Below the pieces are notes generated by a model, which was not told where the DNA came from, did not search any database, and was given only the letters and a program-made list of their open reading frames with translations. Positions 47,129 to 56,532 of a stretch of 64,000 nucleotides of DNA are shown piece after piece. The stretch lies in the NCBI GenBank assembly GCA_000388065.2, contig KB932206.1; one strand, given 5' to 3'. The position numbers and the translations under genes are program-made. Numbering within the stretch: position 1 is the stretch's first letter; the number at the start of each line of letters is the position of its first letter. The DNA is from Fonticula alba ATCC 38817. Taxonomy: Eukaryota; Protista; Nucleariida.

Positions 47129-47164
<36 letters not shown>
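47129..47164 (+). repeat. (CAG)12 trinucleotide repeat upstream of the SOS-like start codon
   Basis: Directly visible; preceded by CCA/CAC repeats. Confidence 0.9.
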
Positions 47165-47169
<5 letters not shown>

Positions 47170-47259
47170 ACACCAACAGCACGCACTGTCATTATCGTTG
47201 CTCGCTCACCCCCCCACCCCCTGGCTGTGTGCGCAGGAGAGAAAGAGAAAGACACAACC

Positions 47260-50200
47260 ATGGCCACACGTCGGCCATCGGCTCCGCACGATCGGGCCCT
47301 CACCATGACGGCCCCGTTGCATCGGACGCCGCAGCCCCTGGTCTTCCAGCCTTTCTTGGACCAAATCCTCCCGAAGGTGCATCTGATCGCCTCGAACGGT
47401 CTGCAATTGGAGCCCGGCGCGTTGAATCGCCTCGATCGCTACCTCTTCCTGGTGTTGGTATACATTCTTTCTGGACTCGAGGCCTCCGGAGCCACGCCGG
47501 GCCCGGCCGGCGGGGCCCCGGCCGTCGTCCCACCCGCCGGCCATGCCTCAGTGCCCCACTCGCGCACCGGCTCGGCCGGCACCATCGGGGCCACCTCGTC
47601 CACTGTCCCGGCCGCCAGCCCAGCCCCCACCGGCCCGGAGATGGCTCCCTATGGCCTTGCACATGTGGAATTCCAAGACCACCATCCGTGAGCTCGCCGC
47701 CGCATGTCGCCGCACATTGAATCACATCCTGCCGGCATCGGAACACAATGTCATTCGCATTTCCCCTCCTCGGCCTCGACCCAAGGTGCGCCAAATCCNN
47801 NNNNNNNNNNNNNNNNNNNNNNNNNNNNNNNNNNNNNNNNNNNNNNNNNNNNNNNNNNNNNNNNNNNNNNNNNNNNNNNNNNNNNNNNNNNNNNNNNNNN
47901 NNNNNNNNNNNNNNNNNNNNNNNNNNNNNNNNNNNNNNNNNNNNNNNNNNNNNNNNNNNNNNNNNNNNNNNNNNNNNNNNNNNNNNNNNNNNNNNNNNNN
48001 NNNNNNNNNNNNNNNNNNNNNNNNNNNNNNNNNNNNNNNNNNNNNNNNNNNNNNNNNNNNNNNNNNNNNNNNNNNNNNNNNNNNNNNNNNNNNNNNNNNN
48101 NNNNNNNNNNNNNNNNNNNNNNNNNNNNNNNNNNNNNNNNNNNNNNNNNNNNNNNNNNNNNNNNNNNNNNNNNNNNNNNNNNNNNNNNNNNNNNNNNNNC
48201 ACCTGCCAGCATTTCATGATCATCCCCTGCGATTGGCAGCCCTCTGACTTGCATTCGCCCCGCCCCCGACGGGCGGTTCAACACCCGAAGCTTTCCAGCG
48301 AGGCAGGCGTCTTCCTGAGTGGCGTCATCGAGTACCTGGCGATGGACATCATCAAGCTCGCCGGGTATTACACGCTCAATGACCGGCGGCGCTCGATCAC
48401 CGACTCCGACATTCATGAGACTGTGCGTCCTTCCCTGGCCTTCCCTCGCCCGCCCTCTTCCTCGCCTCGCTCCCCTGTCTGCACTGGCATATGCCCCCAT
48501 GTGCCCGTGAGCACAGTACATGTGCATGCCTGTGGTCCAAACTGACCCCCCCCCCCCCCCCTGCGTGCCAGGTGTTCATTGATCCCGATCTTCGTGCGCT
48601 GCTCCGCCGGGCCAATGGAGCCTTCTACTTCCGAAACTGCGTCTCCACTCTGAGTCGCTGTCATTCGGACCTGGTCCTCCTGCAGAAGTACTTCGGTGAA
48701 ACGCTGCGTGTGCTGAAAAGTGACATCGACTCGCTGCCGGCCTTCTTCCGTGGATCGATCGAGCCGCTGATGATCGCCGTTGAGGAGATCATCCGGCAGA
48801 TCCGCGACATGCGCCCGGGCGCCGATGCCCTGCCCTGTGCGTCTCTGCTTCCCCCTCTCGCCGCTTCTCTCCCTCTCCCTCTCTCTTCCCACCCTTGCGT
48901 CCTGGTTGCTGACCGCCACCCGCCTGCCCACGCCAGTCCTTTGCAAGGCCATTGATTTGCTGGTGTCCATCTCTCCACAGATCTTGGACTACGCCCAGAA
49001 GGCCATGAACCTCTACACGCGCTTGCCCATCTGGCTCGAGCAGCCCTCGGTCAAGCACCTGTTCAGTGTGCGTCGTGAAAAAGGGGCCCATCCTCCCCGA
49101 CCACCGCCGCCACATTGTCTAACCCCGTCCTGTTCCCGTGCCCTGTGCAGGAGCGCAAGATGCTTTCCTCGGCTTACCACCACCTGGGATGGCTGCTGCT
49201 GATTCCTCTCCGCTCGACCATCTACTGCCACTCCATGCTCGAGCGGCTTTTCTTCAACTTCTTCCGCTCCGAGACCCCCTTCATCGACCATTTGGAGAAG
49301 GTACACCATCTCCCCCGCCCTCCAGAGGGGCCCTTCTCTCTCCCCTCCTCTCTCTCTCTCTCTGCCCTGTGACAGCCCGCTGACCAGCTGCTCCTTCTCT
49401 CCCAGGCACGCGATGCGTCGCAAGCTGTACTGCGCATGAGTGATGCATTTGGCATCCCGCTGGTGCCCGGGTCCGATCGTCCGTACGCCGGGTCCTACTC
49501 GTCGCTGATTTCCTCGAACTCGGCAGCGGTGGCCTCCGGCTCGGTCGAGGCCGCCTCCTCGCCGTTCTGGCTGCTGGCCGAATCGGCCTTCGCGGCCGAT
49601 GATCCGCGCTATGCTTACTGGCTGGTGCGTGGCCAGCATGGTGGGGCCTGTGCTGCAGGGCCGCACCCAGGCTCCCTTTGCCTCCCCTCGCCATCTCATC
49701 AACTCCCCCTGCCCCCGGGGTGTCCCCTGGTCCTCGGTTGCTCCCCACTCACCCACGGCACTTCCCCTCGCCTCGTCCCCCCCCCCCCCCGCCTCCCAGA
49801 TCACCACTTCTCGGGATTACATCCGGCGCGTTGCCGGCTGGCCGAGCACGGGCGCCACCCCGGCCAGTCGGCTCCATGGGGCCCTGGCAGCTGGCATCCC
49901 GCGCATCCTCTTCGACTGTGTCCTCTCCACGTATGAGCTTTATCCCCTGTCTCCCAGCGGCCCGGCCAGTACCGCGGCCAATGCCCTGCCGGCCTCCCTG
50001 CAGGGCGCACATTTGGCTTTGGCCGGGGCCGGGGCCGGTCTGGAGGCCGGGATGGCCGGCGTCGAGACGCCCGTTCGAAGCAGCGATCCCCTGGTGGAGG
50101 GGGTGCTGGCCGGGTTCCAGGCCCTTCGTGGGGGTAGTGGCGGCGGCTTGACCGACCCACTACCGCCAGGGTTCCTGGACTTCCCGGCTCCGGAGGACCC

Positions 50201-53200
50201 ATCCCAGCAGCCAGCCCTGCAGGCCGAGCTGGTCCAGGCGCAGGGTCCCCCCCATGAGTACATGACCGATGTGCTTTGTCAAATCCCGGCATATGACCCG
50301 GCGCAGCTCCCCGGGTACAACGCCGCGCCGGCCCCCTCGACGCGGAGATCGCGCAAGTGCAAGGACCGTCTTCTTGTGGTGCTGGATCGTCACATCATCA
50401 TCTCCAAGCAGTTGCTTGTGCCGCCGTCTGCCGGGGGCACCTGGGCGCCGCTGGCTCTGGGCGGCGGTGGCGGGCCCCACACGGGAACCGTGGCCGCACC
50501 GCGCGACATCGCCGGCGCCCTGTACATGATCTTCAATTTGATGTCGGTGTCCATTCGCGAGGGCGGCGCGGTGGACGACCACCGGTCCTGTGCGTTCCCT
50601 CCGTCAACCACCCTCCCCCCTCCTGTCCGCCGAGAGTATGCTCCCGCTGACGTATCCTGCCTGCCTCTCGTCTCTCTCTTTCTCTCTCCCCCTCCTCGCT
50701 CTCTCCCTCTCCTTGCTCTCCCCCTCTCCTTGCTCTCTCCCCCTCTCCTCGCTCTCTCCCCCTCTCCTCGCTCTCTCTCCCTCTCTCTCCTCGCTCTTTG
50801 CCTTTCTCCGCGGCAAACCCACCCTCCACAGATATTGAGCTCATCCACAATGAGCCACCGTACGGCGGATTCCTCCTGTGTCTGCGTGATGCCGAGACCC
50901 ATCGGTCGGTGTACGCGGGGCTGCTGCGCGCCCAAACGGCATACCACCTGGCAGTGGCCCGGTCCCGGCTTCGGGCACACCGCTCCCTGACCACGCATCT
51001 GTTCCTGCTGCCGAGCATGCGCCTTAGCATGGACGCCTACAAGTTCGCCATCCCGGACACCAGCGACAATATCATCTTTGAAGTTCTCCTGCCGAATGAC
51101 AATGCCGCCTTGACGGCTGCCGCGGCCATGATCGATCTCAGTTCCGAGGAGTCGTGGTCCGGCGCAGCGGTCCAAGACTCGCCGCAGATTCGAGTGCGCC
51201 ATGCTCCATTTGCCCTGCCCGCACATGTGCATGCACATGCACATGTGCCACTTGCCCTCGATCCATACTAGTCCTCCCCGTGTCCCACTCGCGCTCCAGG
51301 CGGCATCGGTGGCCAAGTTGGTCGAGCACCTGACCCACGAGCGCTACAACAACCCCCACTTCATCGGCGAGTTCCTCCTCACATACCGGTCCTTCACCGA
51401 GCCAGGCACCCTGCTTCGCTTGCTCACCGAGCGCTACTACATGCCCGAGCCCACCTCGCCCGACCTGACTCCGGAGGACCTGGCCTACTTCCGGTGCGCC
51501 GAGGCCGCATGGCTGCCTCCTCGCTCGCTCTTTCGCCCTCGCTCCTCCCTCCATGCTGCTCCGCCTTTCGGCCATCCCAATTGACATGCCCCCCCCCCCC
51601 CTGCCCCCCGATTGTGCTGATGGCCCGCCTTGACAAAGGTCCCGCATCAAGCAACCGGTCCAGCGCCGCGTGAAGAATGTCATCAAGAACTGGGTGGACA
51701 AGTACTACTCGTATGACTTCATGTTTGCTCCGGAGCTGACCGAGCAACTCCTGCTGTTTGTGGCTGACATCGCCAAGGCCGAGGGTGCCGAGCGGGAAAT
51801 GCGGCACATGACGGCCGGTGCCAACTCGGCCGTCGACTCCACCGGGGCTTTGCTGTCCCCCTCGCCAACCGGGTCGCTTCCCCTGGCGCAGGTGTCGACG
51901 ACCAGCTCCGGCGAGGTGCCGCGCACCTTCTTCGAGACCATCTCGTCCTTGATCGAGCGCCGGCGCCTGGAATTCGAAGCCACCTCGCCAGTGGCCGACC
52001 CCAGCGAACTGACTGCCCTCAGCCTGCTGGCCGGGATGTGGCGCTCGCCGGTGGCCGTCACCAATCTCCTGCTGGCACGCGATCCCCACGAGGTGGCTCT
52101 TGCCCTGACCCTCTACGACTCGCGGCTTTTCTGCCGGATCCGGTCTCTGGAGTGCCAAAACCAGGGCTGGGTCAAGCGTCGCCCGGCCGAGGGCGGCAGC
52201 TTCGCCTCGGCCCCAGCGGATGAGTGCGCTCCAGATGCCGCGTCGCCCGCCGCCGCCGCCGCCGCCACCACCACCACCACCACCGCTGCTGCTGCTGCTG
52301 CGGCTGCCCCCNNNNNNNNNNNNNNNNNNNNNNCCCCCGCCACTGTCGCTGGTACTTCCACCACCTCGGACACCGCCTTCACGGCCACGGTCGATGCGCA
52401 TCCGGCCTCGCCGCTGGCTCTGCTGCGCGACGCACCAAACATCCACGCGCTCACGCTGCGCTTCAATCGCACTGCCGGCTGGGTGAAGACCCTCATTCTC
52501 GGGGTGCCGGATGCGCAGAAGCGTGCCGAGGTGCTGGAGCGCTTCATCCTCATTGCCGAGCGGTGCTTCCGCCTGAACAACTTCCATGCCACCATGGCCA
52601 TGGTGTCGGCCATCAATTCCTCCTCCATCCGGCGCTTGCGGAATACCTGGGCCCTGGTCAGCCAGCGCGCCAGGACCATTCTGTCGGATCTGCAGAAGAT
52701 CGTCCACACGGAGCGCAGCTACGCCACTTACCGGCGTCTGCTGCACACCGCGCACCCTCCGCGGGTCCCCTACTTCGGGGTGTACCAGTCGGATTTGACC
52801 TTCATCGAGGACGGCAATCCGGACCTCATCCCCGGCACGGCACTTGTGAACTTCTCCAAACGCCGGCGTTTGGCCCAGGTCATCTGGGAGATCCAAACCT
52901 ACCAGCAGCAGGTGGGCGGCTACGAGCAGAAGGCCGAAGCGCTGTTCGGGTCGGCCGGGCTGGGTCCCGGCCGGCCCGGGTCCCCCACCACTGGCATGGT
53001 TTTGACCGCTGGTCCTGGGGCTGGGCTCCCCCGGTCTGAGTCGCTCCACGATTCGGCGTCCCTCGGGGGCGCAGTGGCCACCGTCGGGGGCACCGCGTCG
53101 TCGGTGGCATCGCCGTCCTCCGGCTCCGGGGGAGCTGCCACCGCGTCTGCTGCTGCCGCCACTGCCGCCACTGCTGCTTCCTCGGCGACTGCTGCTACTA

Positions 53201-55116
53201 CGGCCGGTGGTGGTGCCGCTGCCAGCACCACCGCAGCTGCGCCCTCGGTTGTTCAGGCGGAGATCCAGCTCCTGCTGGTGATTGCGCAGAATCTCGAGCC
53301 GGCGGAAGACGATGACTTCTGCTATGAGCAATCGCTGCGCCTCGAGCCGCGGGACCCGTCTGCCGGTGCTCCTCCGGCCCCGGCCCCGGCCCCGGCGATT
53401 GACCACCAGCAGCCCGCGTCCGGGCTGCCCGGGGGCCATGCAGACAGCGCGACCTCCTCCGGCAGCGGAGGCGGCGGTAGTGGCGGCGTTCCGGACGACG
53501 TGGCGCCGGGTCGGACGCGCGCAGCCTCCACCGAAACAACCACCGACACGGTGCCGGCCTCCGGCGCCACCGCCGATCCCGGGGTCGACCTGGAGGGCGA
53601 CCTTCTGGCCACCTCCGGCTCGACAGACTCGGTTCAGTCTGTTACGTCCCCCTCCACGACCAAGTCCCTGGTGGGGTCGGCCAAGCACCGGCATGTGGGA
53701 TCGGTCTTGTCTTCGGCCCAGCCGACACACTCGCCGGGGGGCACGTCGCCGGTGGTGTCCCGGCCGCCCTCCTCCCTGAGCACACACTCGCGCGTGGTGT
53801 CCACATGGAAGCGGGGCATCACCAACCTCTATGAGTCCATCCGCGACTCGGGGTCGCACGAGCGCCAGCGGGAGTTGTCCAGCACCACCGCCTCGGAGGC
53901 CGCCGGACATCGACTGTATGGGCTTCGCCGGCCGAGCACCGAGGCTGCCGACACCGTCCGGCCCCGGTCCCAATCCACGCGGCCCGGGCTGACCGCCAAC
54001 AACTCCGGGACCCGCATGTCCTCCTCGCCCGTGGGGGGAAGCTCCCTGGCCGGGTCTGCGGGTGCATCCATCTCCGTGGGCGATCTGTCACAGCACCACT
54101 CGACCGCGGCACCAGGCAGCACGGTCAGGCTGGCCATCACCACCGACACCCCGCCATCGCGCGTGTCTTCCCGCGAGCAGACCCCCTCGCCGACGTCCTG
54201 GTCGCCGCTACACGCGCAGAATGCCGAGCAGCAGGCTGCCCAGCAACAGCAGCAGGCGGCGGCCGACGAGTACTTCCTCCACCGGGGCTACTCATCGAAT
54301 GAGTCCCTCTCGCCGACGCTGTCAGTGTCTCACAACTCCTCGGTCTCAAGCCTCGGCGGGTCGCATCATCGGTACGACTCCCCCTGCCCGGCATGCGGGT
54401 TACGCCGCTTCCCCCTTCACATCTCCCCCCATCCGCCGCCCGCCATCCCCCGGCTGCCCCTTGTGATCGCCTCGCCTGACATCCCCATGACCGGCAACCA
54501 GTGCCCGAAGCCAGAGCACGAATGAGGTCCCCCTCCAGCTGTTGGCGCCAGTGGGCAACATCGAGCGTGACTTGTCGCCAGACTCGCTGGTCGCCCTGCA
54601 AGATAGCTCGGATCCGGTATGTCCTGCCGCATAAGTTCCTGGCCGCCCTAGCACGAGGCAATTCCCGCTGTCTTTGCTAACTCGCACATGTGTCTATGGC
54701 GCCCCCACTTGCTCCCTTCCTCCTCTTCCCTCCCTTGTTCCCCCCCCCCCCCCTTGGAGCAGCGTTCGAGCCGGGCCCTTCGTCGGTCCCACACCTTCAA
54801 CAGCCTCTCGGTGGTCGGTCCCTCCTCCGGCCCAGGATCTGAGCTGTCCGCCTCGTCGACTGACCACGCCGGATCCGCGCCGTACACCCCCACTCGGAAG
54901 GGGAGTTTGGCGTTGCATGATGACGATCGCCACGCGTCGCCAGTGGTGTCCGGCGGGCTGGACCTCTCCGGGGATATGCTGACGCCAGACATCCTGACCG
55001 GGTCTCCGATGGCTAGCGCGGCCCAGGCATCTCGGTTGGCCCGTGCATCTGCCAGTCCCTCCGGGCGCCGGCTTCCTCCTCGAGGGTCGGTCATGCTGCA
55101 TCCGGAGCAGTTTTAG
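47260..55116 (+). CDS. SOS: Son-of-Sevenless-like Ras GEF: histone-fold pair, DH, PH, REM, CDC25 and long S/T-rich tail; multi-exon, interrupted by gaps at 47799-48200 and 52312-52333
   Basis: Histone fold AGVFLSGVIEYLAMDIIKLAGYYTLNDRRRSITDSDI (cf. SOS1 [35 protein letters not shown]). DH WLLLIPLRSTIY. PH DRLLVVLDRHIIISK. Linker YKFAIPDTSDNIIFE (cf. YRFAEPDSEENIIFE). REM LVEHLTHERYNNPHFIGEFLLTYRSF. CDC25 LNNFHATM, PPRVPYFGVY, EDGNPD, VNFSKRRRLAQVIWEIQTYQ. Start codon (47260 or 47305) uncertain. Confidence 0.9.
47681..47798 (+). repeat. 118-bp direct repeat, copy 2, at a contig edge inside the SOS gene (probable mis-join)
   Basis: Matches 42212-42330 and ends exactly at the N-gap starting at 47799; puts a TGA in the SOS frame. 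Confidence 0.9.

Positions 55117-55518: not shown

Positions 55519-55566
<48 letters not shown>
55519..55566. repeat. (GT)n microsatellite between the convergent 3' ends of SOS and the EMI1-like gene
   Basis: About 24 GT units visible. Confidence 0.95.
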
Positions 55567-55572
<6 letters not shown>

Positions 55573-55705
55573 CGGGGGCTAACCAGCGTGCTGGCCTCGG
55601 GCGAATGTGATGCTTTTGAGTCTATAAATTTTGAGCAGGTTGTGAGAGGGAGAGAGACAGAGACAGGGAGGAGGAGCTCGAGAATGTGGGATCCACACAA
55701 TGGAA

Positions 55706-55850
55706 CTAGTAGTGGGCACGCTCGCAGTAGGCCGGGGGATTGAGAGGGGGGAAGTCCGCCGGCGGGGAGTCCCGCATAGTCAGAGGATGTGTGTCGACCA
55801 CAACATCCTTCTGCTTCTCAGCCAGCACTTCATTCCACCGATCCTGTGCG

Positions 55851-55887
<37 letters not shown>

Positions 55888-56532
55888 GGGGAGAGAGAGA
55901 GAGGGGGGGGGGGCAGGGGGCGTTGTGTGCGGAACAGAGAAAGATACATGCACACATGTGCGAAGTGTCTGGCACATCGCGCCAAGACAGGAGGATGACC
56001 CGAGCGCACCAGCTGATTCTCGCGGTGGTTGTACTTCACCATGAAACAACTCTTCACGAGATCCCACTCCTTGTCACAGTTTGTCAAACCACCATGGACG
56101 TAGTACATCTTCCACTTGTGATATGACTCTAGGGTGGTCGAGCGGATGTCCAGCAAGACGAAAGGGCGTCAGTAAGAAAGACCAGGGGACTGGGGAGGGG
56201 GGCGGCAAAATGGCCGAAGGGGGGAGGCAATCAGCCTTCGCAGGGCCACACGCACTGTTGCAATAGAAAAACATTTCGAAATAGTGCTTGCACGAGAGAG
56301 ACTGCGAGGATTCACTCTCTGCCATCTTGGTGAGCTGCTGCATCAGGGTCTCGGTGTGCTGAGCCATCTCACTGGCGGATGCGGCGACCGACTGCTCGGC
56401 CACCATCGGCGCGGCAGCATCGCCAGCGGGAACCGGCTGCTCGGCGACCGGGCTGCTAGCAGTCGACTGCCCAGTGTGTGCACCGGGCACAGGAGTGTCC
56501 TCGGCGGCCGGCTTGCTCGAAAATGGCCACAT
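55706..56532 (-). CDS. EMI1: EMI1/C22orf39-like twin-CX9C mitochondrial intermembrane-space protein, 3 exons
   Basis: Spliced: MWPFSS..SCKHYFEMFFYCN|KSYHKWKMYYVHGGLTNCDKEWDLVKSCFMVK..|DRWNEV..HPLTMRDSPPADF. Two exact CX9C motifs flank YYVHG. Confidence 0.72.

Follow-up and report, generated by a model that had tools for sequence, protein, structure and literature searches.

A probable, highly divergent SOS-family Ras exchange factor, split in the public annotation, in Fonticula alba

Does the gene at positions 47260 to 55116 (plus strand) of a 64,000-nucleotide stretch of Fonticula alba DNA (contig KB932206.1, hereafter the window) encode a member of the SOS family, and if so, what does it say about the age of that family? 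SOS is the textbook link between receptor tyrosine kinases and Ras, and tandem histone folds together with the SOS linker motif mark its members. F. alba belongs to the Opisthokonta, order Rotosphaerida, which is the sister order to Fungi. In a survey of SOS subfamily counts, SOS was found in animals, with one member in Monosiga and none in fungi or slime mould (Díez et al. 2011; PMC3141262), and SOS has been annotated in a unicellular relative of animals in a 2026 Nature paper (PMC13366479). We found no literature report of SOS in Fonticula, in other holomycotans, or outside Holozoa in a limited search, so that an earlier mention is possible. The locus is likely a single multi-exon gene for a very divergent member of the SOS family. 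With good confidence, its product can be read as an SOS-type RasGEF comprising two histone folds, a divergent DH domain, a probable PH domain, a helical linker, REM and CDC25 domains, and a long disordered tail, laid out as follows (window coordinates; residues are those of the deposited protein).

47260 to 47550, plus strand: exon 1 in frame A, with the start codon and histone fold 1 (alpha1-alpha2) followed by an Ala/Pro/Gly-rich insert, placed by SOS alignment.
47642 to 47785, plus strand: inter-fold segment LPxxLxxW...IRELAAA in frame B, with a candidate donor GTGCGC from 47786.
47799 to 48199, no strand: assembly gap 1, a run of 401 N within the histone domain.
48201 to 48422, ending at 48589 in the next exon, plus strand: histone fold 2 (H2A-like), in a frame open from the gap edge.
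48602 to 49462, plus strand: DH domain, residues 80-270, in four exons (48572-48836, 48937-49067, 49151-49300, 49406-49624).
49463 to 50309, plus strand: low-complexity insert of about 224 amino acids between DH and PH, residues 271-494, spanning intron 49625-49799, without counterpart in holozoan SOS.
50310 to 50944, plus strand: putative PH domain with a Gly/Pro-rich loop insert, residues 495-625, spanning intron 50590-50831.
50945 to 51094, plus strand: SOS-type helical linker with YKFAIPDTSDNIIFE at 51038-51082, found by phmmer and Smith-Waterman.
51185 to 51759, plus strand: REM domain (RasGEF_N), residues 706-813, Pfam E 1e-23, spanning introns 51194-51299 and 51494-51638.
51928 to 52929, plus strand: CDC25 catalytic domain, residues 870-1195, matching the whole Pfam RasGEF profile (E 3.8e-53), with a 70-amino-acid Ala/Thr-rich insert that holds gap 2.
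52312 to 52333: assembly gap 2, within the Ala/Thr-rich insert of CDC25.
52930 to 55116, plus strand: Ser/Ala/Gly-rich disordered tail, residues 1196-1831 (636 amino acids), with the stop codon at 55114-55116.
54372 to 54501 and 54617 to 54762, plus strand: two introns inferred from sequence and equal to the deposited model, outside the RNA-covered interval.

The original prediction, made from the letters of the DNA, had guessed that the organism was Fonticula, and this proved correct. The encoded 1831-residue protein matches NCBI H696_04019 with 100% identity (HMMER search and a later protein search); this entry is listed as a "hypothetical protein" of Fonticula alba, on the fungal side of the opisthokonts, and is named "Ras-GEF domain-containing protein" in UniRef. 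The exon list derived here reproduces the deposited protein exactly, including the stop codon. Transcript data consisted of contigs from a single 2012 study with four small runs, examined over 47200-53199; the runs were taken as RNA because their contigs skip GT..AG segments. Eight GT..AG introns are defined by these contigs (48423-48571, 48837-48936, 49068-49150, 49301-49405, 49625-49799, 50590-50831, 51194-51299, and 51494-51638), six of them with a GTGCG donor and the remainder including one GTACA-type donor, and the spliced sequence forms a single open frame. The gene is thus transcribed and spliced. For the first of the two introns in the tail, pairing of donor 54372 with an acceptor at 54538 was discarded on frame, and 54372-54501 fits. 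Elsewhere, contigs of depth 25-35 connect 50038 to 50943 through 32 foreign letters in all four runs, and numerous loose contig ends lie at 50021-50067 and 50964-50970. Low-complexity, GC-rich sequence of a different locus probably cross-matches here and produces this junction.

Both N-terminal histone folds match SOS at the cognate position. The two folds are colinear with the pseudo-dimer domain of SOS, fold 1 lying upstream of a frame break and gap 1. Histone fold 2 has as its top PDB match the SOS histone domain 1q9c (phmmer, E 4.8e-5), ahead of H2A histones. In Smith-Waterman shuffle tests, fold 2 matches the SOS of Salpingoeca urceolata with z 11.6 (Gumbel p 2e-7), and fold 1 matches residues 15-53 of the same protein with z 6.5 (p 1.4e-4). 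Exon 1 has non-zero RNA depth in X2 and X4. The inter-fold segment aligns to a conserved SOS stretch, (F/L)PxxLxxWAxxEA, and the first residues past gap 1 (FMIIPCDW...) align to the LS(F/L)PVEK segment of SOS.

The assembly is damaged in this region, and the public gene models reflect the damage. The coding flanks of gap 1 align to adjacent positions of the choanoflagellate and Capsaspora SOS, suggesting that both sides of the gap belong to one gene and that little coding sequence has been lost. Part of the gap may be an intron, given the consensus donor GTGCGC at 47786. Upstream of the gap, an additional G follows 47764 in the RNA contigs from each of the four runs, so the assembly lacks one base here. 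Segment 47260-47798 is not one open frame, and frame A, which encodes fold 1, must change to frame B before about 47642. An assembly indel like that at 47764 may account for this shift as readily as an atypical intron. GT..AG pairs of a suitable length class occur (for example, 47551-47623), and none of them makes a convincing intron, as none has the GTGCG donor together with the CTGAC branch motif that the verified introns show. No RNA contig from the four runs bridges gap 1, and none bridges gap 2, whose flanks share one frame as written and match positions 1-33 and 36-181 of the RasGEF profile; the deposited coding sequence jumps over 52312-52335. The public annotation splits the gene: 47260-47691 is a separate 143-residue gene with no Pfam hit, and the main model begins at the ATG at 48216, just past gap 1, in a frame that stays open as far back as the edge of the gap. 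What the 143-residue gene encodes is histone fold 1 at the N-terminus of the SOS gene, severed by the frame break and the gap, and the analysis corrects the annotation accordingly. With the public model split and truncated at a gap, and with its DH, PH, and histone domains below Pfam detection, the gene will be missed by domain-based surveys.

The linker is a further SOS-specific segment, and the REM and CDC25 domains are unambiguous by Pfam. When the linker exon was searched against PDB with phmmer, 13 sequences were matched, all of them SOS (best E 0.035), and its Smith-Waterman match to S. urceolata SOS has p 5e-4. The motif type Y(R/K)FA.PD...NIIFE, which closes the helical PH-REM linker of SOS, is present in the Fonticula protein. 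Both motifs on which the original prediction had relied were located, the second, NFSKRRRLAQVIWEIQTYQ, at 52849-52905. The REM domain aligns with residues 599-720 of SOS1 at 62.5 bits. Searched together against PDB, REM and CDC25 match human SOS1 best, at 164 bits, followed by yeast Cdc25 at 127 and RasGRF1 at 110, the RasGRF1 entry comprising the CDC25 core only. The catalytic hairpin, DLTFIEDGNP (NILKTEEGNP in SOS1), has the general RasGEF form; as judged from its sequence, the REM-CDC25 unit is intact, with a canonical catalytic hairpin. Three lineage-specific inserts rich in Ala, Gly, Pro, Ser, and Thr break up otherwise conserved domains at residues 271-494, 822-864, and 955-1025, the last of them inside CDC25; all are transcribed and in frame.

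The DH and PH domains have diverged much further. The DH region aligns colinearly with the DH domain of SOS in a short context (MAFFT), and in Smith-Waterman tests it matches the Capsaspora DH (p 2e-3), while the comparison with the S. urceolata DH is not significant. Its C-terminal helices were recovered by hhalign at E 0.0044. For residues 1-720, a model made by AlphaFold from the single sequence has a predicted local distance difference test (pLDDT) score of 38 overall, 50-62 in DH and about 30 in PH, which makes it unusable for PH, and its 13 best Foldseek matches are all DH domains. In a model of residues 1-290 built from a three-row alignment that included two SOS rows, pLDDT rises to 58 overall and 60-79 in DH, and the top Foldseek matches are again DH domains; the E values of the DH matches are 0.02-0.04 for both models. 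VIA-align places the DH domain of human SOS1 first for the DH model (1xdv, Z 13.4, root-mean-square deviation 3.5, 185 aligned; 1dbh, Z 13.1; 1xd4, Z 12.7; 3ksy, Z 12.3), at scores close to what helical folds can reach by chance. These models suggest, with modest confidence, that a DH domain is present at the fold level. In the alignment, a Glu early in the DH domain of both SOS rows, which we take to belong to the conserved DH region CR1, is Leu in Fonticula. This change hints at a regulatory DH domain rather than a Rho exchanger, a reading that hinges on the alignment.

The PH domain is probable, with indirect support. A profile of the SOS PH domain and linker was matched by hhalign at E 5.4e-5 (66% probability) over 151 columns from the PH strands on, with the linker supplying part of the score. 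A hidden Markov model built from two SOS sequences gave only 4.2 bits, yet scored above all 500 shuffles, and non-cognate domain pairs, used as a control, gave no signal in the shuffle tests. Other searches with the N-terminal half were empty: residues 1-705 had no match among 182 other proteins (phmmer), a metagenome scan with residues 15-720 retrieved no relative, an Atlas search with residues 1-330 gave no usable match, and a word-index protein search with the histone-DH region returned only H696_04019 itself. In a language-model comparison of residues 1-1210, SOS made up the 17 closest Atlas clusters, at 0.93, followed by RasGRF at 0.81 and 0.78 and fungal RasGEF at 0.76. The domains that the original prediction had listed in SOS order were recovered for both histone folds, the linker, REM, CDC25, and, at the fold level, DH; the evidence for PH is indirect and comes from the profile match.

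Set beside known systems, the Fonticula protein has the same order of histone folds, DH, probable PH, linker, REM, and CDC25 as animal SOS1/SOS2 and Drosophila Sos (3KSY, 1XD4, 1DBH, 1Q9C), and SOS is the best PDB match for its histone fold 2, linker, DH model, and REM+CDC25. It differs from animal SOS in DH and PH domains that are too divergent for Pfam, in low-complexity inserts of 224 residues (DH-PH), about 43 residues (REM-CDC25), and 70 residues (in CDC25), and in a 636-residue Ser-rich tail without a Grb2-type proline-rich cluster. The SOS proteins of S. urceolata and Capsaspora owczarzaki are colinear with it across the whole N-terminal half, and the similarity is significant for both histone folds and the linker and, in Capsaspora, also for DH; unlike the Fonticula protein, they have Pfam-detectable RhoGEF and SOS1_NGEF_PH domains and two to four PxxPxR/K motifs in short tails. 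The fungal Cdc25/Sdc25-type RasGEFs are 44-49% identical to it in the CDC25 core and carry SH3, WW, and DUF7783/DUF7784 domains, whereas the Fonticula protein lacks these by Pfam and has an N-terminal half of SOS type. RasGRF1/2 share the DH-PH-REM-CDC25 core, in which PH is probable for Fonticula. The N-terminus of RasGRF is made of PH, coiled coil, and IQ, not of histone folds, and this arrangement was not found in the Fonticula protein, whose N-terminus has SOS-type histone folds.

To place the catalytic half, we examined its nearest relatives. Among 10,074 HMMER hits, the 150 best sort into three groups: Cdc25-type proteins of fungi, which carry SH3, WW, and DUF7783/7784; GEFs from Amoebozoa, many of which have REM-CDC25 modules in tandem; and two true SOS proteins, from S. 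urceolata (with Pfam RhoGEF and SOS1_NGEF_PH) and Capsaspora (XP_004349414). A word-index protein search retrieved generic and fungal RasGEFs only. Two tandem REM-CDC25 modules are present in many amoebozoan proteins (Filamoeba, Balamuthia, Vermistella, and Planoprotostelium). The Balamuthia entries are labelled 'Son of sevenless 1', yet have no DH, PH, or histone domain by Pfam, and the name looks like a transfer error. A maximum-likelihood tree of REM-CDC25 was constructed from 40 rows under LG+C20, leaving out fragments without REM, twelve long-branch rows, lower-scoring group members, animal SOS, and RasGRF. The fungal clade is split at 100/100 from a group of amoebozoan GEFs, the two holozoan SOS, and Fonticula; within this group, the SOS of S. 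urceolata and Capsaspora pair at 100/100, with Fonticula outside. The approximately unbiased (AU) test rejects neither a grouping of Fonticula with SOS (p 0.345) nor one with the fungal Cdc25 clade (p 0.37). The CDC25 phylogeny, suggested with the original prediction as a check, does not decide on SOS orthology: the tree lacks a Fonticula-SOS pairing, and the AU test retains that pairing together with the fungal one. In an earlier FastTree analysis of 136 rows, Fonticula was joined to two long branches, a position rejected as long-branch attraction. It is thus the architecture and the SOS-specific segments, rather than the tree, that support membership in the SOS family.

Several observations weigh against this assignment. 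No RhoGEF, PH, or above-threshold Histone domain is detected by Pfam; the Histone match reaches only E 0.003, below the cut-off, and at E up to 10 nothing except this weak match is found in the DH, PH, linker, and exon 1 sequences. The DH region, also when searched exon by exon, has no DH match in PDB by phmmer, and confidence in the AlphaFold models is low (pLDDT 38 and 58), the better one having been built with two SOS rows in its alignment. Helical folds can attain a VIA-align Z of about 13 by chance, and pairwise Smith-Waterman tests of PH by itself are not significant (p 0.03-0.15). Fold 1 connects to the remaining gene only across the frame break and the unbridged gap 1. Fonticula has an end branch of 1.9 with no supported partner, and the maximum-likelihood tree, with its 40 rows and no animal SOS or RasGRF, does not place it with SOS. 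The CDC25 core alone fits RasGRF1 (E 1.1e-30) and Cdc25 (3.3e-27) better than SOS1 (1.6e-24) in PDB. Finally, there is one PxxPxR/K motif in the 636-residue tail, compared with four in the tail of Capsaspora SOS and two in that of S. urceolata.

One alternative is an ordinary RasGEF of the REM-CDC25 kind whose helical N-terminus is unrelated to SOS, the 143-residue reading frame being a separate gene and the likeness to SOS due to chance or convergence. The two genes of the public annotation would fit, as would the detection of RasGEF_N and RasGEF only by Pfam, the weak DH and PH signals, and nearest CDC25 relatives that are amoebozoan and fungal GEFs without DH. However, five segments match SOS at cognate positions and in order (shuffle-based p 2e-7, 1.4e-4, 5e-4, and 2e-3), and pairs of non-cognate domains show no significance; DH folds head both structure searches; and the deposited ATG at 48216 falls inside the histone fold, in the frame that is open to the gap edge. 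We regard this explanation as quite unlikely. It is also unlikely, though somewhat less so, that the gene descends from an older DH-PH-REM-CDC25 GEF ancestral to RasGRF as well, which would make it a pre-duplication or sister homologue rather than a strict one-to-one orthologue of SOS. The preference of the CDC25 core for RasGRF1 would be consistent with such a descent, as would a tree without resolution, an AU test that rejects nothing, and the second place of RasGRF after SOS among the Atlas clusters. Against it stand the tandem histone folds and the SOS linker motif, the return of SOS1 as the best PDB match once REM is included, and the Atlas values themselves (SOS 0.93 versus RasGRF 0.81).

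Horizontal transfer from a holozoan, or contamination, would leave the gene uninformative about the opisthokont ancestor. Among the sequences retrieved, SOS-type proteins come only from holozoans (S. urceolata and Capsaspora), as a transfer would predict. Yet the gene sits on a 2.53-Mb scaffold of the Fonticula assembly GCA_000388065.2, in a window of about 66% G+C, and all eight checked introns have the same GTGCG/GTACA-type donors. It is also far more divergent from the holozoan SOS than those are from each other, and it carries lineage-specific low-complexity inserts. Foreign origin is therefore very improbable, and a divergent SOS-family gene native to Fonticula remains the preferred reading.

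How such a protein would work can be proposed by analogy with its animal counterparts. It would activate Ras at the membrane, as SOS1 does, and may be held inactive by its histone and DH-PH modules as in animal SOS. Release could come from membrane lipids and possibly from Ras bound at the distal site of the REM-CDC25 unit. The residues of that site, which the original prediction had proposed to inspect, are partly retained: when the protein is aligned to SOS1 by phmmer, R688 and N691 are conserved, Arg stands in place of L687, and Phe stands in place of W729 in a stretch aligned at only 2.5 bits. An allosteric Ras site is thus possible in the Fonticula protein. The tail contains 18% Ser and four of the five RxRxxS/T sites in the whole protein, and the Grb2-binding proline-rich cluster of several PxxPxR motifs was not found in it. 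Since the tail lacks this cluster and is rich in Ser and RxRxxS/T, recruitment and regulation are more likely to involve lipids and phosphorylation than Grb2. From the tail sequence, Grb2-type recruitment is doubtful and control by phosphorylation is plausible. The proposal in the original prediction that the protein may act without canonical receptor tyrosine kinases would fit a tail with one PxxPxR/K motif where Capsaspora SOS has four. The Grb2-binding tail is treated here as a regulatory add-on, outside the core that defines the SOS fold.

In the surroundings of the gene, a CAG repeat run lies at 47130-47170, about 90-130 bases 5' of the start codon and presumably in the 5' untranslated region. 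The downstream spacer contains (GT/CA)n and (GA/CT)n microsatellites at 55540-55600 and 55850-55900, and the downstream neighbour, at about 55706-56532 on the minus strand, is a 177-residue gene with a PANTS-like domain (PF11326).

The analysis adds a divergent member of the SOS family in a new lineage. By comparison with the holozoan proteins, the SOS architecture probably predates the split between Holozoa and Holomycota, and it appears to have been lost in Fungi, which keep the SH3-type Cdc25. The original prediction had held that the full autoinhibitory module arose before the animal-fungal split; SOS-type parts in the right order agree with this, and the PH component is the weaker link, its profile match being indirect and shared with the linker. 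A full-architecture SOS in Fonticula would put the origin of the histone/DH-PH autoinhibitory design before the divergence of animals and fungi and would imply its loss in Fungi. More tentatively, and with a good chance of being wrong, the ancestral opisthokont SOS might have been a Ras activator gated by lipids and phosphorylation and independent of Grb2 and of receptor tyrosine kinases, with the proline-rich Grb2-binding tail arising later in holozoans. In that case Fonticula would have retained the ancestral way of working, which might lie downstream of receptor kinases of its own in aggregation. A natural SOS without a Grb2-binding tail, in an aggregating organism, lets one ask what SOS did before phosphotyrosine signalling expanded.

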